Source: Basidiobolus meristosporus CBS 931.73 (lineage: Eukaryota; Fungi; Basidiobolomycota). Taken from it: a stretch of DNA of 64,000 nt. The DNA is taken from NCBI GenBank assembly GCA_002104905.1, contig MCFE01000105.1, positions 106,904 to 170,903 of the forward strand. Direction: 5' to 3'. The notes beneath the pieces were generated by a model. The model saw only the letters and a list, made by a program, of their open reading frames with translations, was not told the DNA's origin and made no database searches. This document shows positions 27,456 through 64,000 of this stretch, in pieces. The number at the start of each line of letters is the position of its first letter. The first letter of the stretch is position 1. The translations under genes and the position numbers were made by a program.

Positions 27456-29444
27456 TTAGTTCTTCTTCTCCTCGTTGTCAACAACAGTCTCGCCGTTAGG
27501 GGCGTTGTTGGCATCTTGGGCAGCACGGTTCTTGTAGACAGCCTCGAACAACTTGAGGGAAGCTTGTTGGAGCTCGTTGGTACCCTTGCGAAGTTCCTCG
27601 GGGTCAGCCTCCTCACCGAGGGCAACGGATTCACGCAATTTGCTGATTTGCTCCTTGATCTTCTTGGCCTCCTCTTGGTCAACTTGTTCCTTGAAGTCGT
27701 TCATGTGCTTCTCGGTCTCGTTGATGGCGGACTCGGCGTTGTTGGTGGCTTCGATAGCGGCCTTGCGCTTGGCATCGCTCTCGGCGAATTGCTCGGCGTT
27801 CTTGACCATGTTCTCAATCTCGTCCTTGCTCAAGCCAGAGGAGGCAACAATGGACATGGATTGATCGCGGCCAGTGGCCTTATCCTTGGCACCGACGTTA
27901 ACGATACCATCAGCATCAATATCAAAGGAAACCTCGATTTGAGGAACACCACGAGGAGCGGGGGCAATGCCAGTAAGGTTGAAGTCACCGAGGAGCTTGT
28001 TGTCACGGCAGAGTTCACGCTCACCTTGGTAAACCTTGACTTGGACTTGGGTTTGGCCATCGGCGGCAGTGGAGAAGACTTGAGACTTCTTGGTGGGGAT
28101 GGTGGTGTTACGGTTGATAAGACGAGTGAACACACCACCCAAGGTCTCAATACCAAGGGAAAGAGGGGTAACATCCAAGAGAAGGATATCAGTTACGGAA
28201 CCAGACAAGACACCACCTTGAATAGCGGCACCGATGGCAACGGCTTCATCGGGGTTGACGCTCTTTCCGGGCTCCTTGCCGAACAATTCCTTGACGGTCT
28301 CGATGGCCTTGGGCATGCGGGACATACCACCGACAAGAACGACTTCACTGATGTCAGCGGATTGGACACCAGCATCCTTCATGGCCTTTCTGCAGGGCTC
28401 GAAAGTACGCTCCAACAAAGGCTTGGTCATAGCCTCGAACTTGGAACGGGTGAGCTTCATGTTGATGTGCTTGGGACCGGTGGCATCAGCAGTGATGTAA
28501 GGAAGGTTGATGTCAGTTTGGAGAGTGGAGGAGAGTTCGATCTTGGCCTTCTCACAGGCTTCACGAATACGTTGGATGGCCATTCTGTCGTTGGTGAGAT
28601 CAATACCCTCGGTTTGCTTGAAGTCGCCAACAATTTGGTTGACGAGGTGGATATCGAAATCTTCACCACCCAAATGGGTGTCACCGTTGGTGGACTTGAC
28701 TTCGAAGACACCATTCTGGATTTCCAAAATGGAGATATCGAAGGTACCACCACCGAGATCGTAGATGGCAACAACCTTGTCTCCGACCTTGTCCAAACCG
28801 TAGGCAAGGGCAGCGGCGGTAGGCTCGTTGATGACACGAAGAACATCGAGACCAGCGATCTTTCCGGCATCCTTGGTGGCTTGACGCTGGGCGTCGTTGA
28901 AGTAAGCGGGAACGGTAATGACTGCTTGGGTGATCTTCTTGCTAAGGAAAGACTCGGCGGTATCCTTCATTTTACCCAAAACGAAGGCACCGATTTGACT
29001 GGGGGAGTACTTGGTACCTCTGGCCTCAACCCAAGCATCACCGTTGGTGTGCTTGACAATCTTGTAGGGGACGGCCTTGATGTCGTTTTGGACCTCATGG
29101 TCATTGAAGTTACGACCGATCAAACGCTTGGTAGCGAAGAGGGTGTTCTCAGGGTTGACAACAGCTTGACGCTTGGCAGCTTGACCAACAAGAAGCTCAC
29201 CTTCCTTGGTGAAGGCAACAACGGAAGGAGTGGTTCTGGTACCCTCGGAGTTCTCCAAGATTCTGGGGTTCTTGCCGTCCATGATGGCAACGCAGGAGTT
29301 GGTGGTTCCCAAATCGATACCAATTACGGAGCCATTGGCAGTGCTGTAGTTACGTGCAAGAACACCAAGAGCAGCGCTCTTTTGACGGAACAATTTGGTG
29401 GCGTTCAAAGCAGAAGCCTGGGCGACTTTAGAAATGCTATACAT
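27456..29444 (-). CDS. SSC1: Mitochondrial Hsp70, intronless
   Basis: Presequence-like N-terminus (MYSISKVAQ), [36 protein letters not shown]. DnaK-like, with no EEVD terminus. Confidence 0.96.
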
Positions 29445-30781
29445 ATTGAAAGCTGTTTCGGTAAAAAGAAACCTTGAGAGAAACAAGAAGCAGTATCGAC
29501 TCCACCCGACAATTGGCAATATTTATAGTCTGTCCCCGAGACAAGTGAATTTGTTCGTTCAGATTCCAAAGTGAACAGGTCCAATATTTGCTCAAAAGCG
29601 AAAAAATTTCTTTTGCCTAAATCGGTATCCCAACGCAACTGAGATGTCGGATTTGAAACTTTCAGTAACCAATTTAAACTTAACTCCGTATTTCAATTTT
29701 TCGTGGCTGTATTTCAATATACCGGTACTAATCTACAGTTTATCCGATGAGCATTTCACCTCACCAAACCCTGTCCGATATCACGACTCGCAGGCAATGT
29801 GCGCAGTCTCCTGGTCTCTGAATGTGTCATCTCTTAAGTAGCCGCTTCCACAGCTATCTGATTGAAATGTGGCTGAATCAAGGCGGTAATTTACATATGG
29901 TATCAATATCAAGGCTTACCAATGGAGTAGGTAAGCCCCTCTCAACCCGATCTATGACCCGAAGATTTTGGGGCGGTCACTCATTTGTACTGATTTAAAA
30001 TATGATGTTTCTTTTGTGATCAAATACCAACCTCTCCCTCGTTGTTGCTACGGTTACTCGTGCCAATGGGAGTCTCATCAAAAGAAGGCGCAGCCATCTA
30101 TTGCTGGCCCTTCCGAAAGAACACCCTTCTGATTGGTCCATCGCTGCCCTACCCATGCTAAATATCGGCTCGTCCATAATAAGAAAATCAAGTGAATACG
30201 TAAGCGCTGCGGAGTAGTTGAAGCAGTTACACCTAACTGGCCACGTATCCAATTAATCTCGAACTTTCCCCATCTTTCGCTCTCATCCAAACGGGTCAAC
30301 CTGCAGATTTGACTCACAACCTGATCGCATAGAGAATAGCGGGGTCTCACGGAATTCTCCGCTGTGATAATACACATCAATTTAATTCGGAATAAGTTTT
30401 GACTTTTTCGGATTCCCCAAGGTCCATGATGTCAGATTGAAGGGGCCACTCAAACCCAGGAGGTCGTGAGATTTAGGTGTAGCGTGTTAACCACCCATAT
30501 TAGGGCCGATTGGTATCTTGGGATAATCTTTTGATTCTGCGCCACATCTTTCAGGGTAATTTACGTCATTTATATGCGTCCAAGTGCTCGGTGGATTCGA
30601 GCGGATGGTGTTTTTGACAAAGCGTTGGCGACATTTATTCAAACTGACCGGTGTACATAAAACATATATATTTCAAGATTACTTACATCCCATGGATTGA
30701 TAGATTCAAAATGCTTTCTACGGGTGGCGATATTGTCATCGTGTCCACTAGGATATCAGTACGCTTATGCGGGTTATCCGT

Positions 30782-50155: not shown

Positions 50156-53100
50156 TTAGGCTGATTTATCGTCTTTGTTGGGGTCGTATATCTCCTCATC
50201 ACCCACCGGTGCCAAGTTTTCCTTCAGATTCTTCGCTTCATCATGTTGCAGTTCTCCAGGTTCATGGTTGCGCTGAACTTCCAACTCAGTCTCACCCGAA
50301 CCAAGCTTCTTGACACGTACTTTGGCTGTTTCTCCAGCACGTACACCGCCATCGATCAATAGACGGGCCAACGGATTCAACAGTTTCTTTTGGATCAATC
50401 GGTTCAGAGGACGCGCGCCGTATGCGGGGTCATAGCCATGGTCGCCCAACCAATCTCGCGCTTCCATATCAATATCCACCTTGATTTGACGATCACTTGT
50501 GCGTTCCTCCACTTCCTTGATTCGAACATCCACAATATCTCGGAGCGCTCTCTTGGAAAGGCGATTGAATAGCACCTACATCATTGGAATATCATGGTGA
50601 ATCCAGATACTTTACCGCATGGTTGGATCACCAAGTATATCGTATCACTTACCATTTCATCAATACGGTTTACAAACTCTGGAGCAAAGTTCCCGCGCAC
50701 AGCCTCCATTACGTTGTCTCTAGCGCGTGCACTCACAACGCCCTCCTTGTTGATATCGTGAACAAGCGCATCTGCTCCCAAATTCGAGGTCATGATGATA
50801 ATCGTATTCTTGAAATCAATCTTTCTTCCTTTGCCTATTTAATATTGAAAGTCAGAACCAGAGTTGAGGCAATAAAACTTGTGCTTGTGCTAGCTTCTGG
50901 AACGAAGGGCACATCTTGATTTTCTACTTACTATCAGTCAAAACACCATCGTCAAGAACCTGCAGAAGTATGTTGGAGACTAGAATTGGGAGAGAAATCA
51001 TATGTTAACATGTCACTATCTGCGTGGCAACATCCAGCTCAAATCCCATATTTACCATCTCTATGGGCTTTCTCCATTTCATCCAAGAGCACAACCGCGT
51101 AAGGCTTGCGTCGTATAGCTTCAGTCAACTCGCCGCCCTCTTCGTGTCCTACATAACCGGGTGGGGAGCCAATAAGGCGACTAACTGAGAATTTCTCCAT
51201 GTATTCTGACATATCCACTCGAATGATCGCATTCTCGGTATCAAATAGGAACTTGGCAATCGTTTTGCATAATTCTGTCTTGCCAACACCTGTTGGTCCT
51301 AGAAACAAGAATGAAGCAATCGGTCGAGACGGGTTCTGTAGACCGGCGCGGCTTAGACGGACGGCCTCAGCAACGGCAGTGATCGCTTCGTCTTGACCAA
51401 CAACACGCTTCGAAAGCACGTCTTCCATATGGAGAAGCTTCTCCCTCTCACCGCGCATCAAATTGGCCACGGGGATTCCGGTCATACGCGATACTACTCG
51501 AGCAATATCGTTTGATGTCACGCATTCGTGTATGAAGGATTCAGATTCATCTTCAAGCGAATTCTCCTTGGGGAGACGTTTTTCAAGATTCGGGATGACA
51601 CCATAACGAAGTTCTGATGCACGCTGGAAGTTGCCCATACGCTGCGCAGCTTCAAGATTGACACGCGCCTGTTCAAGGTCTTCTTTGACTCGTTTAATCT
51701 CGTCCAACTTGCTACGCTCCTCGTTCCACATCTTGGTCATCTTTTGGCTTTCATTCTGCTTTTCCTCAAGTTTTGCTTGCAGCTTTTCCCTGCGTTCAAT
51801 CGAAATAGCATCAGATTCTTTACGAAGCGATTCAAGTTCAATCTGCATCGTCATAATTTGACGATCTAAGGTTTCCAGTTGCTCGGGTTTGCTCTCCTGC
51901 TGGAGGCGTAATTTCGAGCATGCCTCATCTACAAGATCAATCGCCTTATCGGGCAAGAATCGATCGGTGATATATCTATGTGAATGAAGTGCCGCTGACA
52001 CAAGTGCAGAGTCAGCAATCCGAACACCGTGATGTACTTCATAACGCTCTCGCAGCCCTCTCAAAATGGAGATCGTATCTTGTACCGTGGGTTCCTCAAC
52101 CATCACCTGTTGGAAACGACGCGCTAATGCAGGATCCTGCATTATGTACTTGCGATATTCGTCGACAGTTGTCGCGCCCACACATCGTAACTGGCCACGA
52201 GCTAACGCTGGTTTTAAGAGATTTCCAGCGTCCATGGCGCCTTCGGACTTGCCCAGGCCCAGCAAGTTATGGATCTCATCCACAAACAGGATGATTTTCC
52301 CTTCTGCTTCCGTTACTTCTTTAAGAACAGACTTAAGGCGGTCCTCAAATTCGCCCCTGTTGGCCATTCCGTGGTGAGCATATCATATTTTCCGAACACT
52401 GAGCTAAAACTTACCGGTACTTAGCACCTGCCACCAAGCTCTGGTCAACAGTAATATTAAATTGCAGTTAGAAACAAACCATTTCACAAACGTTAGTGGG
52501 AGTGGACTTACACCAAGATCTAACGCGACAACACGCCTTCCTTGTATTGATTCGGGTACCTCGTTTGCAACAATACGTTGTGCCAAACCCTGAAATGGCA
52601 GGTTAAAAAGCAGGACATATATAACAAGCTTGATGTGATTCCCTTACTTCAGCGATGGCTGTTTTACCGACACTAGAATAAGTTGATTGAAAATGCATTA
52701 GTTTATAGTGTGGCACTAGAGTAACCTGTACAATCTTGTTGCTCACCCAGCTTCACCGATCAAAACAGGGTTATTTTTGGTTCGACGTGCTAGGCTTCAA
52801 GTCGTCAATAGGTTAGTCAACGGCCTATAAACCGATCGTTACCAAGAGTCTTACACTAAAATCATGTTAGTACCAAGCCTGAGCAACACGTCTGAGGTTC
52901 ATTTAAACTATTCCTACCTTCGAGAGTACGTCTTATCTCTTCGTCACGGCCGATAACAGGGTCTGTATAGAGATAGTTCGGTTAATATGGCGTAGACCAA
53001 AAGCAGTCAGCAATTTTATTGAAAGAGCCACGCAATATGCTTACCCAGTTTGCCCTTTTCTGCCATTGCTGTTAGATCAAGTCCCTACAAATACCACATA

Positions 53101-53528
53101 GAGTTCAGGAAAGCAGTAAAACGCTATATGGTTCATAAAGCACGCATACAAATTGCTCCAAGGCGCTTTTTTGCTCCTGTTGTTGGTTTGGATCTAAACG
53201 AAAACCTCCGGGCCCACCTCTTGGAGTTCCTCCTATTTGATTCAACCAAACAGAATTTATTGAACAAAGTCATTCCAGGAAACCCGATTTTTACAAACAT
53301 CAACCTACCAGAGTAGAAGCGCTTAGCACCAAGGGCCAAAGGCGCTGCCCAGAAATGACTATGCCGAACGGACGCCGAGATTCCAGGACGTAATAAAACA
53401 CACCCCCGAGCTCGTGCGGAGCTTACCCTACTAGTTTCTGGGAACACACGTTTCGAAACGTTTAACTTTGTTAAATTTTCAAGTCCCGTCGACTTGAGAA
53501 TACGGCGTTGACTGGCTCGCAACATCAT
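50156..53528 (-). CDS. HSP78: Mitochondrial ClpB/Hsp78 disaggregase, multi-exon
   Basis: Presequence-like N-terminus with no ClpB N-domain. NBD1 (FVDEIH, RCVGATT), middle domain, NBD2 ([21 protein letters not shown]), YGARPL. Confidence 0.94.
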
Positions 53529-54178
53529 ACAAACAAAAAAATGATTGTCAAACGCGGCCGGTTAATTGGCATTTATATTGCTAAAATCATCATGCCACCT
53601 ACCGAGCTGGGCAGATTTCGATATTATTCTTCTGATGTAATATATAAGCCACATCTCATTTGTGGTGAGGTGAGTGATGTCATCAACACGATAAACCACT
53701 ACCACAAAAATAGAAATCAGCCAAGATAAAGTGCATTCATGGCTGTTCAATTCACATCAGTAGGCGATAGTGCTTTTCCTCGCTGACTTGGACATTATGT
53801 AGCATATCCAGGCGAATAGCAGCTACAACAGTCAAGTGAAGTCAAAGGCGCAGAGAATTGTCAACTCACGGAGTCTTTGTTTACCTGCTTAACATCCAGG
53901 CCGCCATTCTGGAAAATCGATATGCTTACTTCCCTAAAGTATGTAGATGAAACACCATTGATGATGTCCCCTCATGCAAATCATCTTTGACCTAGCTTGT
54001 TGAATATCCATGATTTGTGACTGGCCTGGTAAACATCGTGACACAATAAGGTAGTGCTATAAATGTATATCAGCCAGGTGTTTATGTATACTCTGTTGAT
54101 ACCACTTTACAGAACCAAAAAGCAAGTTTGATAGTAAGAGGGATTAATTTGCCAGTATTCTTACCAAAACTGCCTTTT

Positions 54179-54466
54179 TGTTGTAAATTTGGTAACCATA
54201 CCTAAATATTCCATTTACTTAGAACTTGAGCAAGATATTCAAAGACTCATGATCCAAGCCACCTTGTTGGGATTTACTTTGAATATCTTGCTCAAGTTCT
54301 TTGTTGGGATTTACTTTGAATATCTTACCAAAATATTGAGGACATGAAAATTCTGAAGGTTATGCACGTGTTCTCAGTCAAATATCCAACTTTTGCTAAA
54401 ACGCTCCGAAAATAGTGGTGTTTTCTTTAAAGCGTATCACAACCATGTCCTGACATTGTTACAATA
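54179..54466 (+). mobile_element. Degenerate solo-LTR relic related to the Copia LTR, in the opposite orientation
   Basis: Starts TGTTGTAAATTTGG..ACCTAAATATT..ACTTAG, like the minus-strand LTR start TGTTGTAAAAATTTG..ACCTAATTATT..ACTTAG. CCTTGTTGGGATTTACTT and ACATGAAAATTCT match the LTR. The right end is uncertain. Confidence 0.6.
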
Positions 54467-54869
54467 AAGGCAAACGGCGACTACTCCTTATTTGTCTTGT
54501 CTGGTTCAGCCAATTATACCAGGAATATTGGATTTCTATCCATATACTATTCTGCCGGATTAGCTATAATACCATAAAAGTGTTGCGAAGGTCAAAAATA
54601 ACAACACAAACCTATGATGTGCCATTTGTCCTCGGGCTATTCCATTGCTTTCTATGATTTAAATCATTGTGATATTCGTTATCAGTAATACCCAAGTATG
54701 ATGATTTTGGAGTGTGGTCATGTCGAGAATTTGTTTATGCTTTGGAGTTCCATTTGAAGTTTACTCTAGTAACTATTAGTAGAGGGAATCTGATGGCAGA
54801 GTATCCAGAACAGGTTTTCTATCACAAATACTATTAGAGTGGGTAGTTGAAATATAACGACATTACATC

Positions 54870-55160
54870 CTAGTGGAGGTTCCCGACCTTTGAACGCCAT
54901 ATCCGGGCTCTTTCAAAGCCGTTGACTCCCATGCTATAGTCAGTAAACATCTGTAAAAATCACTGGAATGGTTCATGACAAATGGGCCGTGTTGGACAAT
55001 AGGTACTCTGATGGGCTCACCAGCAACAAGTACCAAGTGGACGGCAGTGTCTCCGGTCTCCATACTGATCACGTCACCTTCTTCGCTCAAAGTCAACGTA
55101 TGATGCGCCTGGCCCAGTGTGCGCTCGGATCCAAATAGTGACCAGATATGACTTTGATGA
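54870..55160 (-). pseudogene. Pirin C-terminal fragment (5'-truncated, frame-disrupted)
   Basis: HHTLTLSEEGD..VHLVLVAGEPIRVPIVQHGPFVMN, then in a shifted frame MFTDYSMGVNGFERARIWRSKVGNLH*. No N-terminal cupin was found upstream. Confidence 0.8.
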
Positions 55161-55849
55161 CGGCTCAAACGGAATTGGCTGATAAGAGCACTATGAATGA
55201 TTCCATGGTTTCATTTATTGGCCAGAGAATGATTGAATCTGGTTCAGAAAATTCCAGTTCCAATGTATAATATGCGCAGTTTAATTGAGTGAAGTGTTTA
55301 TAAGAGGGAATATCAGAATAGATTAGTCAAGAACAGAAGAAATCCCTGGTAACTTCTGTATCATTCCATTAGAAAATTGACTCTACAATTGCTTCCTCAT
55401 GGAGCGCTTATTGTATTGAGTAAATTCCCGGACTAGTAGGAATAAGGGTTAGCCTTATAGGGTTAGGGGGGAAGCAGTCACCAACAGGTGAAATCTTTAT
55501 TTCAAATGAAACAAAGAAGCCAGCGCTACTGTTGTAGCTTTGATACAAGAGTGTGTAGCTGAGGTGAATTGGTCAGTAACTGTAAAAAAATTAAGAAAAG
55601 GCCAGCAGGATACCATCATAATATCAGCTGAATTCCAAGTTTCTCAAAACTGACAACTCTCAATATCTCAGATACTAGCTGTTGGGCAGACAAGCAGATT
55701 TATTTTCCAAGAGGAGACTAGGCCAAATAGCATTCACACTAAATTTGGCAATCAGCTGCCTACAACTTCTACCAAAAATTGCAATTGAAAACTTAAACAA
55801 AAACACTAGCTGAATCCCAGCAAAGTACCATTAGAATACCAGCAGAATA

Positions 55850-56181
55850 TGTTGTAAGAGTCTTGGAGATATTGGAAGTGATTGGGAGAACAAGTAGATT
55901 ATGTGGTTTTCACTTAATGATTTATTGATTGTAAAAGTAGTATTTATACTTTTACCTGGTCTTGGCATAACAAACACGTAGAATAGGTTAAGGAAGGTCC
56001 CAAGAACATGTGTGCAAAGTTTGGGGCTGTTTGGACAACTTTGAGAATTTTCATGTTCTGGGTAAATATTCTAAGTAAATCCCGACAAGGAATTTGGTCA
56101 GTATTTTCTAGGATTTGAAGGTTATGATCTAAGTGACTAAGTTAGGTGAATAATTAGGTGGAAATACAAATTTTTACAACA
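55850..56181 (-). repeat. Copia 3' LTR (332 bp, TGTTGTAA...TTACAACA termini)
   Basis: 8-bp terminal inverted repeat. Aligns without indels to 63458-63784. Left flank GAATA is the candidate TSD. Confidence 0.93.
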
Positions 56182-56190
56182 CTCCCACTC
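56182..56190 (-). promoter_or_regulatory. Copia polypurine tract (GAGTGGGAG)
   Basis: Purine-rich run immediately before the TGTTG of the 3' LTR on the minus strand. Confidence 0.75.
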
Positions 56191-56192
56191 AG

Positions 56193-59100
56193 CTAAATGT
56201 TCATACTGACTAGTCCTAATTTTGACCTAAGATATTCAAACTTGTCTCTAGCTAATGGTTTGGTAAATATGTCTGCAATCATTTCATCTGTAGGACAGTA
56301 AACTAAGCTAACTAAGTTATTCTCTATAGCTTCACATATGAAATGATGTCTAATATCTATGTGCTTGGTTCTAGCATGAAAAGTTGGATTTCTACCTAAT
56401 TGTATACATCCTTGATTATCTTGAAATAAAGTAATAGGCGTTTTTTGACATAGGCCTAAATCTGTAAACAGTTTTCTTAACCACATTGCTTCTTTTGTAG
56501 CCTCACAGGCTGCCATATACTCTGCCTCTGTGGTGGAAAGTGCTACGGTTGGTTGTTTTCTTGAATTCCATGAAATTGCTCCTTTACAGTAAAGAAAGGT
56601 GTATCCTGTGGTGGATCTTCTGTCTTCCAAATTTTGTCCCCAATCAGCATCAGAGTATCCCACAAGATCCTGTTCTGAATCCTTATAAGTGTATCTTAAG
56701 CAGATATCAGCAGTTCCTTTTAGGTATCTAAAAATCCGCTTAACTGCTGCAATATGATCAGATCCATAATTCTGATTATGTTGGCTGACAACTCCCACTG
56801 AATATGAGATATCTGGACGTGTTCCAAGCATGATATACATCAGACTGCCGACCATAGATTGATAAGGAAAGTCAGGGCTTTCAGATGGCACCAAGCTCTC
56901 TTGATTTGGTTGAGTTTTGACCAAGTTAAGGTTTGTCTCCATTGGGGTAGCTGCTGGTTTACAGTCTTCCATTTTGTACTTCTTTAGTATATCTTGAATA
57001 TACTTGGATTGGCTTAGGGTGATAGTCTGGGTATTTCTGTCTATGGAGAACTTAATTCCTAAGTAGTAACTAAGTTCTCCTAGATCGGACATCTTGAACT
57101 CCTTATATAGGCTGGATTTAGTCTCTTCCAATGTTTCTAGGTTATTGGCGGCTATAATAAGATCATCCACATATAGAGCTAATAGAACTGGATTTGCTCT
57201 ATCTGGCTTATAGTATATACTATAGTCAGCATTACTTCTTTTGAAACTCAAGGATTCCAAATAAGAATCTATCTTGCAATTCCAGGCTCTTGGTGATTGT
57301 TTGAGACCATATAGTGACTTTTTAAGCTTGCAGACCAAATGGGGGTTATCTTGGTCAACAAACCCATCAGGCTGGTCCATATACACGTCCTCATCAAGTT
57401 CTCCATTCAAAAATGCAGTTTTTACATCCATTTGATGAATAAAAAACTTATATTTGGCTGCAATAGCCAATATTAATCTGATGGAATTAAACTTGGCTAC
57501 CGGTGCAAAGGTCTCAGTATAGTCAAGTCCTTTTGTTTGAGAGTATCCTTTGGCTACAAGTCTTGCTTTGTATCTTTCAATTGTACCATCAGCCTTGTAT
57601 TTTGTCTTGAAGACCCATCTGCATCCAATTGATTTTTGGCTGATTGGTAATTTGACTAAGTCCCAAGTTTGATTTTCCATCAGTGCCTGATATTCCTCAG
57701 TCATTGCAGATCTCCAAAACTTTGTCTGAGGGCTATTTAGGGCCTCTTTTACAGTCTGGGGTTCATCAATATGGACTGAATAGGCATAGGCTAAGTTTGT
57801 ACCCTCATTGATATAGTAATTTCGGCTATTTCTTGTCCGATTTGATCTCCAGGCATTTGATACTGGAATGATCACTTCTGGGATATTCCTGGGCACTGAT
57901 TCTGGCTGAACCATGGTTGTAGAGTCCTCTGGAGTGAAAAAATTTTCATTGTTTTGCTCTGATTCAATCCTGACAATTGGTGGACTTGAGATCAAATTTT
58001 TGTCATCATCTGATGTCATTTTTTGTGAAAATTTTGAATTTTCATCAAACAACACATCCCTGGACTTGATAAGCTTCTTTGCTTTGTTATTGTAGAGTCT
58101 GTATGCCTTACTCTCATTGCAGTAGCCCAAAAATATGCATTTTACACTTTTTAGCTCAAATTTTGACTGATTTCCGGCCAGTTTTTTGGCATATGCTGTA
58201 CACCCAAATATTCTTAGATGTTCTGCACTTGGTCTGTATCCATACCATGCTTCAAATGGAGTAGAATCACAAAGTATTCTGTTATAACTCCTATTTTTAA
58301 GATATACAGCAGTGGCAACTGATTCCGCCCAAAAATCATAGGATAATTTTTGATCATGGATCATAGATCTTGCCATATCAATTATTGATCTGTTAGCTTG
58401 TTCTGATACTCCATTTTGCTGTGGGGAGTATGGTACAGTAGTCTCTTGCTTTATCCCATGAACTTTGCAGAAGTGGATGAAGAGTTTTGAGGTATATTCT
58501 CCACCATTGTCAGAGCGTATTTTCTTGATTTTTTCACCAGTTTCTCTCTCCACCATGGCTTTAAACTCCCTGAACTTAGACAGAGCTTCTTCCTTTCTCT
58601 CCATGAAGTAGACCCATGTGTATCTTGTATAATCATCAATAAAAGTGATTAAATACTTCATCCCACCTAAGGATAAATTTTGCATAGGTCCACACAGATC
58701 TGAGTGAATTAGATCTAATTTTTTCTTAGTTTTGATTAACCCAGAGCTCTTGAACGGTTGTCTGGCTTGTTTCCCATATATGCAGGCTTCACAGTGCTCC
58801 AAATTAGCTGGGGGATCAATTTTCACTCCAGAAATTAGCTGATCTTTGATCATTTTACGCAAATAATCAAAATTGATGTGTCTAAATCTCCTGTGCCAAA
58901 GCATTGGTGTTTCTTCATTTAAGTTACTTATATTGGCTTCCAGATATGATGGAATATAAGTCAACTTGTATAGATTCTGATCTCTGATGCCCGATGCAAT
59001 ATGAGCACCATTTTGATCAGTGATCCTGCATCCAGAATTGTCAAGACTGAAACTGAGTCCTTCTGCTGTGGCCTTGCTTACAGAGAGTAGGTTCTTGGCT

Positions 59101-59557
59101 ATTGCTGGTACATAGAGTACTTCTTTAAAGGTCAGTGTATGGCTTCCTTTGCTGCTTCTAAGGTTTACTTGGATAGTTCCTTCTCCCACTGCATCAAGTG
59201 TTCTATTGTCACCCATCAAAACCTTCTTAATTGGAATATCTTGATATTGGGTAAAAAGTTCTTTTTGGTGTGTAAAGTGTTGAGAAGCTCCAGAGTCAAT
59301 ATACCATGTCTGAGAATCCTTGTTTGTGGTCATATTTAGTGCAGATATGAATAGTCTATCTTCAGTTGTTGCAGCATTTCCATATTCAGGCTTCTTTTGC
59401 TGATAATCTCTCTTTTTCAAACACCGGTCTGATGTGTGTCCTTTCCTTTTGCAGTAGTTGCAAAATAGGTTGTTGTTGCCTTTGTAGGGTCTTGGGTACC
59501 TCTTTTGTTGGTTATCATTGCTTAATGAAGCATTTGCTTCTTCCTTCTTATTGGCGC
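56193..59557 (-). pseudogene. Copia gag zinc knuckle and pol (PR, IN, RT, RNase H), open but cut off from the gag start
   Basis: CNYCKRKGHTSDRC, WYIDSGASQHF, HSDLCGP, SDNGGEY, PQQNGVSE, QMDVKTAFLNG, LYVDDL, GYSDADW, STTEAEY. Confidence 0.95.
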
Positions 59558-60361
59558 TGTGGTGGTGTAGAGGTACTCCTGGGAGAAGCTACACAACTCA
59601 AGGTGTGTGAGGTGTCTGATGGGTGCAATAACCTCTGTGTCTAAACTGCTGGTGTCTTTGTCAATATGTTACTATGGTAAAAGCTCCTGCTTCTCTAGCT
59701 TCCTAGGTGCTCCAAGTGTCTCCAAAGGCCTCTGTGTGTCTTGTGCACTACCCTGAAAAGCTCCTTGATGGCAGGTCTGAGATGTACTGTTGAAGGCAGG
59801 TGCAGTGATCAGCTGCTAATCAATAAGGAAGAAGTGTTACTGATAGAAGGGATGATTTATTGATGAGGGATTACTTTCCCTTAAATACTTTTCCTGATTG
59901 CCAAGTGATTACTAATAACAAGGTTCTAGAACATTCTAGGTATCAGTGGAATTCTTGATGACATCACAATGAGCTAAAATATGCCAAGAATGTCCTGGAA
60001 GGATCTAAAGGGCACAGCACATCCAACCAATCAGGAATCAGTAGTCTGAAACCTGTGCAACATAGAAATACCATATATGGTATTGAAATGGTAGAGATGG
60101 TAACACAGACCTAGGTCATGTGTCACGGGTACTGACGCGGGTACTTGCCTTATACAGATACATCAACTGATCACAAAGCTGAATAACATCTGGAAATAAC
60201 TAATGCTAATAACTAATCAGGGTAAACATCATATGGGGATAATACTGATAATATGGGCAAAAGAAGAATGGGATAATACTGATAAGATAAAATATGGATA
60301 AGTATATCATAATGACTATATGAATAAACTTGTCTGTGGGAGGTATGTTTACCCTACCACA
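59558..60361 (-). repeat. 3' LTR of the nested element (804 bp)
   Basis: TGTGGT/ACCACA termini. Purine/G-rich PPT-like AAGTGGGGGGTGGA abuts it on the minus strand (60362-60375). Confidence 0.85.
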
Positions 60362-60439
60362 TCCACCCCCCACTTGAGCTAAAAAGTTTCAGGGAACTTT
60401 TTAGCTAACCACTGTAAGTTTGGAGAACAAAGTGCTCTC

Positions 60440-62296
60440 TCAGTCTTCCTCAATGAAGCCACCTGTCCTTTCTTGAGATAGAAATCTACATGATGTCATT
60501 GATTGGATATTGTTTGAGTCCACACCACAGAAGGTTGCTGTTAGTCCTGGGCTCTCTGAGTATATAGTATACCATGCTGAACCATCTGGGTAGTTCACTG
60601 CAGTTGCTCTTGCTTTTACTTCCCATGGTCTTCCAAGAAGTAATTCAAAGTTAGCCTTTGCACAAATGAATACTGGGATCTCATGGGGTATTCCTTCAAT
60701 GATGAGAGGGAAGCTGTGAATAATTCCTAAAAGCTCTGATTGCCCTGAGTTGGCATCCTTCATGCTCCAATTGATATTGGTGTCTATGGGCAATAGGTCT
60801 TTGCATGGTAGTTGTTTCCAAGCCTCCAAAGGCATCACACATATCTCAGATCCACTGTCTATATGACATAGGATTTCTTGATTATGCACAGTTCCTGTAG
60901 TTGTTGCAGTTGCCACTGAGTAGTAGTGTTTCTGGCTTTGATGCAGCTTACTGATATCTTGGCTTCCTTGAACTGTCCTGACCTGGTTGCCTTGAGTTGC
61001 TTCAATTGGATGCTTTCTTATTCTGATATGCTCATCCAGAGTCTTTCTTACAGATGGTGATACACTGAGTAGCTCTCCAACCTTGATTGATATGTTGCTT
61101 CCTAGTATATGACTTGTCAGAGCCTCTGGGGTACCATTTTGCTTGACTCTAGGCTGCATGTGGTAGTTGTTGGCCTTGGCAGACTCTTGTAAAATTAATG
61201 GGGGTGATGCTTTCTTCTCAATCACAACTTCTGGCTCACATCTTAGTACTTTTGTTGCTGGGCCTGGATTAGCCATTTTTTCAGGATGGTGTCTCTTTGA
61301 AGCATAAATTGAAGCTATATGATCTTGGGCCTCTCTGGGGTCCTCATAGTCAAAGTTCAGAACTTCAGCTGGATCAAAGTAGTCAGGATCTTCTTCTTCA
61401 TGGAGGTGAACCTTTCTTGTTTGAGAGGTGACTTGCTTGTAGTGAACTCTCATTCCTCCTTGTCCAAATGCTGTGGATAATTTGTCACCATGCTTACTGA
61501 CTATGTATCCCTGAGGACTATATAGGACATCACCTGTGGATAGTAATGACTGAAGCTCTTGGCAATTTCTCTTGGAATGGTTGGCAGAGTCACACCACAT
61601 GCATGTATATTTGACTTCTTTCTCTACTGGCTTCTGACCATATGCTTTGCTGGCAAGTAGCAAAGAGAGTTTCTCTAGTTGCTGTGTTGGCTCCTGAATT
61701 TGAGTGCTTTGATTGCTGGGATTAAGTATGTCTTGGCTATCTTGGTTTTGTTCTGGGCTTAAAAGAAGCTTTCTGATTGGTGAGGTTTCTTCAGGGGCAA
61801 GTAGAATCTGCTTAGCTAACTGAAATGCAGGCAGTGAACTCATAGCTTTCACAGTAGGATTGTTTTCAATCCTTCTCACCAGGCCTTCTGGTAGTGCTCT
61901 GAGCAGATAGGCAGATAAAGTCAGATCAGTGATAATGCCTTGGGCTTTCAGTGACTCTCCAATTTGCTCAAGGCCACTCAAGTATTCTTTCAATGGTAGC
62001 AGCTTAAACTTGCTATAAGCAAAGTTCTCCAAGTCTTTAAGTGTGTAGTCAACTTGTCTCTCTCCGTATTCATCAATCAAGTAGCTCTTCAAGAGGGTCC
62101 AATTTGTCAGCAGATCATTTCTTTCATATAAAGAGAGCATGATCTCATCAGTGCTGTAGGGGGGCATCTCTTCAGCCATAATGGCCTCAGGTATTTTGTG
62201 GGCTCTGCAGAAAAGTTCCCACCTCTTGATGAAAGCTTTGACTTTAGTTCCATCAAAGAAAGGGGTTCCTTGCATTCCTGGTAAAGGTAGATCCAT
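60440..62296 (-). CDS. Gag-aspartic protease polyprotein of the nested element (618 aa, intact, no RT/IN)
   Basis: PFFDGTKVKAFI gag start, CMWCDSANHSKRNC zinc knuckle, HIDSGSEIC catalytic motif, ELLLGRPW. Confidence 0.88.
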   Translation of the reverse strand: MDLPLPGMQGTPFFDGTKVKAFIKRWELFCRAHKIPEAIMAEEMPPYSTDEIMLSLYERNDLLTNWTLLKSYLIDEYGERQVDYTLKDLENFAYSKFKLLPLKEYLSGLEQIGESLKAQGIITDLTLSAYLLRALPEGLVRRIENNPTVKAMSSLPAFQLAKQILLAPEETSPIRKLLLSPEQNQDSQDILNPSNQSTQIQEPTQQLEKLSLLLASKAYGQKPVEKEVKYTCMWCDSANHSKRNCQELQSLLSTGDVLYSPQGYIVSKHGDKLSTAFGQGGMRVHYKQVTSQTRKVHLHEEEDPDYFDPAEVLNFDYEDPREAQDHIASIYASKRHHPEKMANPGPATKVLRCEPEVVIEKKASPPLILQESAKANNYHMQPRVKQNGTPEALTSHILGSNISIKVGELLSVSPSVRKTLDEHIRIRKHPIEATQGNQVRTVQGSQDISKLHQSQKHYYSVATATTTGTVHNQEILCHIDSGSEICVMPLEAWKQLPCKDLLPIDTNINWSMKDANSGQSELLGIIHSFPLIIEGIPHEIPVFICAKANFELLLGRPWEVKARATAVNYPDGSAWYTIYSESPGLTATFCGVDSNNIQSMTSCRFLSQERTGGFIEED

Positions 62297-62347
62297 GGTC
62301 TTGATAATTTGTTCTTTCTTAAGTCTTCTAGGGGCAGTTCAGTCAAA

Positions 62348-62365
62348 CCCCCCCGTTGGGTGCCA
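62348..62365 (-). promoter_or_regulatory. Primer-binding site of the nested element (TGGCACCCAACGGGGGGG), tRNA-Lys-like
   Basis: Lies 4 nt after the LTR end. Resembles the tRNA-Lys1,2 PBS TGGCGCCCAACGTGGGGC. Confidence 0.65.
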
Positions 62366-62369
62366 AATA

Positions 62370-62842
62370 TGTGGTGGTGTAGAGGTACTCCTGGGAGAAG
62401 CTACACAACTCAAGGTGTGTGAGGTGTCTGATGGGTGCAATAACCTCTGTGTCTAAACTGCTGGTGTCTTTGTCAATATGTTACTATGGTAAAAGCTCCT
62501 GCTTCTCTAGCTTCCTAGGTGCTCCAAGTGTCTCCAAAGGCCTCTGTGTGTCTTGTGCACTACCCTGAAAAGCTCCTTGATTAGCAGTTGATCACTGCAC
62601 CTGCCTTCAACAGTACATCTCAGACCTGCCATCAAGGAGCTTTTCAGGGTAGTGCACAAGACACACAGAGGCCTTTGGAGACACTTGGAGCACCTAGGAA
62701 GCTAGAGAAGCAGGAGCTTTTACCATAGTAACATATTGACAAAGACACCAGCAGTTTAGACACAGAGGTTATTGCACCCATCAGACACCTCACACACCTT
62801 GAGTTGTGTAGCTTCTCCCAGGAGTACCTCTACACCACCACA
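62370..62842. repeat. Fold-back palindrome replacing the 5' LTR: 212-bp perfect inverted arms (62370-62581 and 62631-62842) with a 49-bp spacer
   Basis: The arms are exact reverse complements by direct comparison. The left arm is identical to 59558-59769. Confidence 0.93.
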
Positions 62843-62846
62843 GCGC

Positions 62847-63426
62847 TTGATTTTCTTAATTCTTCATCCAGGAGCCTTCCATATACGTAGTTTAAGGTCA
62901 AATCTTCAGTTCTGGACTCTAGGGCTGATACAAGGCCCTGAAACTTGTCTGTCAGGCTATTCAGGATGGTAACTATCACATCCTCATCAGTAGTTGGTAT
63001 GCCAACAGATTCCATCTCATCTACCAGCAGGGTAATTCTGTTAATTAGATTTTTCATTTCTTCTCCTGGCAGCATCTTTGTAGTAAAGAATTTTCTTCTA
63101 AGATACATTTTCTTGGCAGCTGAACATGACTGGTAGGTGTCTTCTAATGCCTTCCAGGCATTCTTTGCCGTTTATGCTCTTGAGCATTGAATTAGCAATT
63201 TGTCCTTGACATTAAGGCAAATGCAGTTAAAGGCACTTTGTTCTTTCTTCTGGTACTTCAAGGCTTCCTCTCCCACGTTTTTGGGAGGGCATTCTTCTCC
63301 CATGACAATATCCCAAAGGCCTCTTTCTTGTAGCAGCATCTTCATCTTCACCTTCCACACTTGGTAGTTAGATCCATCCAACTTTTCAGCAGAGGGAAAA
63401 ATTCCAGTAATAGCAGTAGTAGACAT
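62847..63426 (-). pseudogene. 5' part of Copia gag (UBN2-type), with a premature TAA at 63172-63174
   Basis: KLDGSNYQVWKVKMKMLL, then RA*TAKNAWKALEDTY in frame, continuing MYLRRKFF...RLLDEE. Confidence 0.9.
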
Positions 63427-63445
63427 TGCAGAGAGTGACAGCTCA

Positions 63446-63457
63446 GGGCTCATAACC
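63446..63457 (-). promoter_or_regulatory. Copia primer-binding site GGTTATGAGCCC (half-tRNAiMet type)
   Basis: Directly follows the LTR-terminal CAACA. Resembles the GGTTATGGGCCC PBS of copia-type elements. Confidence 0.8.
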
Positions 63458-63784
63458 TGTTGTAAGAGTCTTGGAGATATTGGAAGTGATTGGGAGGACA
63501 AGTAGATTATGTGGTTTTCACTTGATGATTTATTGAATGTAAAAGTAGTATTTATACTTTTACATGATCTTGGCATTATAAACATGTAGAATAGGTTAAG
63601 AAAGGTCCCAAGAACATGTGTGCAAAGTTTGGGGCTGTTTGGACAACTTTGAGAATTTTCATGTTCTGGGTAAATATTCTAAGTAAATCCCGACAAGGAA
63701 TTTGGTCAGTATTTTCTAGGATTTGAAGGTTATGATCTAAGTGACTAAGTTAGGTGAATAATTAGGTGGAAATACAAATTTTTA
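63458..63784 (-). repeat. Copia 5' LTR, lacking its outer 5 bp (CAACA on the + strand)
   Basis: Matches 55850-56176 with 9 substitutions, then runs into TTAGGG repeats. Confidence 0.93.
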
Positions 63785-64000
63785 GGGTTAGGGTTAGGGT
63801 TAGGGTTAGGGTTAGGGTTAGGGTTAGGGTTAGGGTTAGGGTTAGGGTTAGGGTTAGGGTTAGGGTTAGGGTTAGGGTTAGGGTTAGGGTTAGGGTTAGG
63901 GTTAGGGTTAGGGTTAGGGTTAGGGTTAGGGTTAGGGTTAGGGTTAGGGTTAGGGTTAGGGTTAGGGTTAGGGTTAGGGTTAGGGTTAGGGTTAGGGTTA
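63782..64000 (+). repeat. Telomeric array (TTAGGG)n, about 36.5 units to the window end
   Basis: Perfect hexamer repeat, G-rich strand running 5'->3' toward the end. Confidence 0.99.

Follow-up and report, generated by a model that had tools for sequence, protein, structure and literature searches.

Healing of chromosome breaks by telomerase at short seeds is a textbook process. A close counterpart of the locus analyzed here has been described in Magnaporthe oryzae, in which 19 of 24 de novo telomeres had seeds of 1–4 nt, and 17 of 23 truncated MoTeR–telomere junctions had in-register seeds of 1–7 nt (Rahnama et al. 2020, PMC7367193). The chromosome end of Basidiobolus meristosporus CBS 931.73 examined in this study, the right-hand end of a 64,000-nt stretch of contig MCFE01000105.1 (hereafter the window), resembles the Magnaporthe cases in that (i) it belongs to a TTAGGG fungus; (ii) an element has been cut short and joined directly, and in register, to telomere repeats; and (iii) retroelement-rich chromosome ends appear to have been remodelled repeatedly. 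However, in Magnaporthe it is telomere-specific non-LTR MoTeRs, or rDNA, that are truncated, and the truncations were observed while cultures were being grown (PMC7367193), whereas here a dispersed Copia LTR is cut 5 bp from its tip and the event is inferred from one assembly.

A second point of comparison is provided by the SiRTAs of yeast, in which telomerase is recruited by a telomere-like tract on the 5' side of the site of addition (PMC10055226). At the present locus, two TTAGGTG motifs 17–35 nt upstream of the TTA at which the telomere begins form a tract of this kind in the corresponding position. While SiRTAs are defined functionally, by Cdc13 binding and a raised frequency of addition, the motifs described here are short and may be due to chance.

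Two groups of retrotransposons also invite comparison. As with HeT-A/TART/TAHRE, SART/TRAS and MoTeR, the outermost feature ahead of the chromosome tip is a retroelement; however, those elements are non-LTR retrotransposons that add themselves to telomeres, or insert into them, always in the same orientation, and are confined there, whereas here a single copy of a high-copy, dispersed Copia has been truncated rather than appended, and its own end lacks a telomere repeat. Ty5 and Ty1 (PMC4700185) share with this locus the placement of a Copia-type LTR element near a telomere, but Ty5 is inserted by integrase into silent chromatin and has complete LTR ends, while the outer LTR end is incomplete here.

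The junction between LTR and telomere

The window ends in a perfect (TTAGGG)n array of 219 nt (36.5 units, zero variants), the G-rich strand of which runs 5' to 3' toward the window end, the orientation of a true right-hand chromosome end (Table 1). No subtelomere lies between the non-telomeric DNA and the perfect repeats at the sequence end. Read directly, the outer LTR copy runs ...GGAAATACAAATTTTTA up to 63784 (the fuller lead-in to this position being GGTGGAAATACAAATTTTTA) and is followed by GGGTTAGGG. This outward-facing 5' LTR breaks off at ...AAATTTTTA, 5 bp before its natural tip, so that only CAACA is absent, and its last three letters, TTA, are shared in register with the first TTAGGG repeat. 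CAACA can be taken as the natural tip because the LTR has 8-bp inverted termini and because the inner copy is complete.

Table 1. Features of the chromosome end, listed from the tip inward (window coordinates)
Feature	Position	Strand	Description
Telomere tract	63785..64000	+	TTAGGG repeats; 63782–64000 when the common TTA is counted
TTA, putative telomerase seed	63782..63784	+	Fits both LTR and repeat; chance frequency 8.5%
Two near-telomeric motifs	63750..63768	+	TTAGGTG at 63750, TTAGGTGG at 63762
5' LTR, outward-facing	63458..63784	-	First 5 bp missing (element strand TGTTG, + strand CAACA)
PBS position and N-terminal part of gag (DUF4219, Retrotran_gag_2)	62847..63457	-	In-frame stop near 63172
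Nested LTR-type element in Copia gag	59558..62842	.	TG...CA ends, 4-bp target duplication GCGC
gag C-terminus (zinc knuckle) and pol	56182..59553	-	Protease barrel, integrase, RVT_2, RNase H
3' LTR, complete	55850..56181	-	Ends TGTTGTAA...TTACAACA
Non-coding fragment, 379 bp	55471..55849	-	Minus-strand 3' end ...CTGCTT-CCCCCC-TAA; adjoins the telomere-like scrap
Telomere-like scrap AAGGGTTAGCCTTATAGGGTTAGGGGGG	55440..55470	+	About 8 kb inward of the tip
Pirin gene fragment	54866..55210	-	C-terminal quarter only; residues ~211–268 of 288-residue pirins
Mitochondrial Hsp78/ClpB-type chaperone gene	~50156–53528		~2.3 kb from the Copia element, 10 kb from the tip

These observations agree with the junction as an earlier note on this DNA had described it, with an inner copy ending in CAACA, a terminal copy 5 bp short of that end, and a TTA common to LTR and telomere. 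The note had also considered that copies of the family might naturally end in TTTTTA or carry telomere repeats; the inner LTR proved to be complete to CAACA, and this complete tip of the element neither carries the telomere repeat nor pairs with it. The note's division of the sequence into an intact element and a separate terminal copy had to be given up: both LTRs belong to a single minus-strand Copia element, which occupies 55850–63784.

Integrase requires and retains the terminal CA of an LTR, and the present outer end can therefore not be an integrase product. An insertion by integrase into a telomere array might still have been followed by a small deletion of CAACA and the duplicated target, since the distal junction could also result if the DNA between two TTA triplets were lost. 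Such an insertion should have left telomere repeats on both sides of the element, yet the proximal flank, ...ACCAGCAGAATA, is non-telomeric: the proximal boundary reads ...CCAGCAGAATA followed directly by TGTTG, and 55830–55849 is free of telomere repeats. We therefore reject this explanation, to which we assign next to no probability; on this point the exclusion already made in the earlier note, to which the incomplete LTR end also testifies, stands.

We determined that a seed of at least 3 nt in register is available at 8.5% of the positions in the 64-kb window. Owing to this frequency, a 3-nt seed is by itself weak evidence, and cannot alone separate telomerase from other ways of joining an end to telomere repeats. 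One of these is a telomerase-free capture, in which the broken end would have used the TTA to invade a different telomere, with microhomology-mediated break-induced replication then copying that telomere onto the end. The outcome would be identical in sequence, with perfect repeats directly after a short microhomology, but a homology of 3 nt is very short for strand invasion, and de novo addition at such seeds is a documented route in another TTAGGG fungus. We consider the capture very unlikely and infer that telomerase, not recombination, made the tract.

The junction is known from one assembly, in which it looks real. That a contig was wrongly joined inside a high-copy LTR, either to reads of another LTR copy or through a chimeric read, is nevertheless conceivable: copies of the family are very numerous, one LTR boundary alone adjoining some 150 different flanks, and over their last 183 bp the two LTR copies of the window are identical, leaving no variant by which the terminal copy could be marked. 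Against this stand the 3-nt overlap, which is too short to drive an assembler join, and the length of the LTR, 332 bp, which long reads span with ease. Furthermore, a wrong join inside the LTR would still require a real LTR–telomere junction somewhere in the genome. On balance, it is quite unlikely that an assembly join lies behind the junction.

An old Copia copy from a dispersed family

The LTR of the element begins and ends with TG...CA, within its 8-bp inverted termini, TGTTGTAA...TTACAACA. The inner LTR, which ends ...GGAAATACAAATTTTTACAACA at 56181 (in longer form ...AAATTTTTACAACA), is the sole other copy of this LTR in the window. Both copies begin with TGTTGTAAGAG (at 55850 and 63458), and they can be aligned from there until the telomere replaces CAACA. 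On its proximal side the element is flanked by GAATA, while the distal flank is gone. The pol reading extends from 59420 to 56193 and contains, in the order typical of Copia, a protease barrel, an integrase core and RVT_2, with integrase ahead of reverse transcriptase. Domain matches were obtained to Retrotran_gag_2, DUF4219, gag_pre-integrs, rve (residues 238–333) and RVT_2 (residues 583–828), and a purine-rich tract, GAGTGGGAG, adjoins the 3' LTR. Judged by its gag type, domain order, LTRs and purine-rich tract, the element is a Ty1/copia LTR retrotransposon. In a word search of a protein collection with the Copia pol, the best relative was only 49% identical.

An alignment of the 5' and 3' LTRs revealed nine differences in 327 bp, all of them inside 63497–63601. 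This clustering suggests local gene conversion or uneven mutation, and makes the divergence of the LTRs a poor clock here. Within the 105 bp that hold all nine differences, the terminal LTR mostly has the letter that is in the minority in the family.

The gag region is interrupted by a nested LTR-type element (Table 1), the right end of which is palindromic, with perfect 212-bp arms (62370–62581 and 62631–62842) separated by a 49-nt spacer. The nested element has an ORF of 618 aa with a weak match to DUF4100. Contigs of other copies of the Copia family cross the insertion site uninterrupted, with loose ends at 62843, and intact family copies are without the nested element. Scans of 53000–64000 for tRNAs and with Rfam gave nothing above threshold; weak MIR473 miRNA matches at 62550–62662 were dismissed, as they reflect the hairpin of the palindrome and nothing more.

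Taken together, the nine LTR differences, the stop codon in gag and the nested element identify this Copia copy as old and damaged. Nothing but the telomere has been added distal to it.

The abundance of the family was assessed with contigs from the organism's own sequencing runs (four runs from one study), the comparison covering 1,006 letters. Tens of thousands of family contig pieces match this kilobase, and at the inner boundary of the LTR, 63457/63458, about 150 family contigs part ways into flanks that differ from one another. The family is a dispersed, high-copy Copia family. We had also considered that it might be specific to telomeres, and rejected this candidate in view of that dispersal and copy number and of a tip without a telomere repeat. 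The final 25 nt of the LTR had no match in a metagenome scan, and exact-protein look-ups with two ORFs of the gag N-terminus and with the Hsp78 exon matched no other contig.

A probable older healed end farther inward

Ordinary genes reach almost to the chromosome end. The outermost of those listed in Table 1 apart from the pirin fragment is the chaperone gene, and the closest relatives among the candidates compared in a word search with its Hsp78 exon were Mucorales proteins, at about 90% identity, which confirms that the DNA comes from an early-diverging fungus. Farther inward, at 27456–29519, ORFs of 687 and 653 aa lie on opposite strands and overlap almost fully.

Between the chaperone gene and the Copia element, the arm contains three features in succession: a pirin gene fragment, a telomere-like scrap and a non-coding fragment. 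The 230 bp upstream of the pirin fragment contain no pirin-like sequence, and the N-terminal two thirds of the gene are absent before the scrap. The scrap itself probably survives from a former telomere. The fragment that adjoins it, of which there is no second copy in the window, probably represents a retroelement tail of the telomere-attaching type, and the Copia element sits on its distal edge.

As the truncated pirin gene is followed by a telomere-like scrap and then by a probable retroelement tail, the arm seems to have been healed before. The stretch 55440–55849 would then mark the place where the pirin gene was broken and healed at an earlier time, and where a retroelement was subsequently copied onto the end, and breakage and healing seem to recur on this arm.

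Origin and significance of the chromosome end

The reading that we favor, with a probability of roughly 0.6, is that the junction is an ordinary terminal truncation, later than the Copia insertion, that was capped by telomerase at a short seed. The arm would have lost all DNA distal to a resident and already old Copia element, either through a double-strand break or through loss of the telomere followed by erosion. The exposed 3' end of the + strand, ...AAATTTTTA (...TTTTTA), would have paired through 1–3 nt (TTA) with the template of the telomerase RNA, and telomerase would have built a new TTAGGG tract on it. A break later than the insertion is what we infer from these data, and the finding that no telomere-type retroelement lies beyond the Copia element fits such a later break.

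Counted against a plain truncation is the small target that the break would have had to find: in about 8.3 kb there is a single outward LTR tip, and the junction is no more than 5 bp away from it. A break at random would have a target of about 0.06%, which leaves room for a cause linked to the LTR end. However, the 5-bp nearness is a post hoc find, since a reader would flag many landmarks, and under the favored reading the distance from the tip is probably a coincidence.

The most direct way of linking the junction to the LTR end is to suppose that retrotransposition itself made the break, leaving a free end exactly at the LTR tip. This end would have lost 5 nt by trimming, back to the first usable seed, and telomerase would then have capped it. 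This could have happened through (i) a near-terminal integration with a distal gap that was still unrepaired at replication; (ii) a one-ended integration; or (iii) the joining of a linear Copia cDNA to a chromosome end that had lost its cap. Such an origin would account for the closeness of the junction to the tip, and the TTA at -5 is indeed the first seed of at least 3 nt that is met going inward from the complete LTR tip. The complete proximal LTR end is what a strand-transfer product would look like, and the element lies in dispensable terminal DNA, in which a distal loss would be tolerable. Moreover, yeast Ty1 cDNA joins in chromosome-end events upon telomere failure (PMC4700185). The telomere would, however, have to be as old as the insertion, and yet the LTRs of the Copia copy have since come to differ at nine positions, and its gag has gained a stop codon and been split by a nested element; nor has a telomere-attaching retroelement been added beyond it, as one probably was at the older end 8 kb inward. 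A direct precedent was not found in the literature searched, and we place retrotransposition second, as a rather doubtful source of the break.

The truncation and healing of a resident element thus retains, in modified form, the de novo telomere addition proposed in the earlier note: an outer end that is not an integrase product, loss of the distal DNA, and addition at a short seed together give the best-supported reading of the anatomy. The note had in addition attached significance to how close the junction is to the LTR tip, for which it invoked nuclease cleavage there or a captured cDNA-like end, and had suggested that the family could act as a recurrent telomere-seeding cap. Neither idea received support. 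The Copia element is old and damaged, and its family is dispersed at high copy number.

The position of the addition may nevertheless have been influenced by the local sequence. The two near-telomeric motifs are found 17–35 nt inward of the point of addition, on the strand that has its 3' end at the tip and would form the overhang. TTAGGTG occurs eight times on the + strand of the whole window, and four of the eight occurrences are within the two LTR copies. The motifs, together with the first-available TTA seed, may thus have helped to set the point of addition. A stronger version of this idea is that the outward LTR tip of the Copia family is a preferred site for new telomeres, which we hold to be unlikely. 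Two routes might lead to such a preference: the two TTAGGTG motifs and the TTA might act like a yeast SiRTA, or failed or one-ended integrations near chromosome tips might leave a free LTR end for telomerase. If the tip were a preferred site, a common LTR family would repeatedly seed new ends in this genome, in which chromosome ends are very numerous.

Most likely, the junction is a further example of a known process, the healing of an end by telomerase at a short seed, and not a special capping system. Because short-seed healing by telomerase is already documented in fungi, a single healed break adds little, and interest in the junction is modest unless it recurs at other ends. Nevertheless, the arm seems to show two successive end-repair events, the first at the truncated pirin gene and the second at the Copia element. 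Its value is that of one data point on how often this fungus breaks and re-caps its chromosomes, and on the seed sequences that are favored when it does so.
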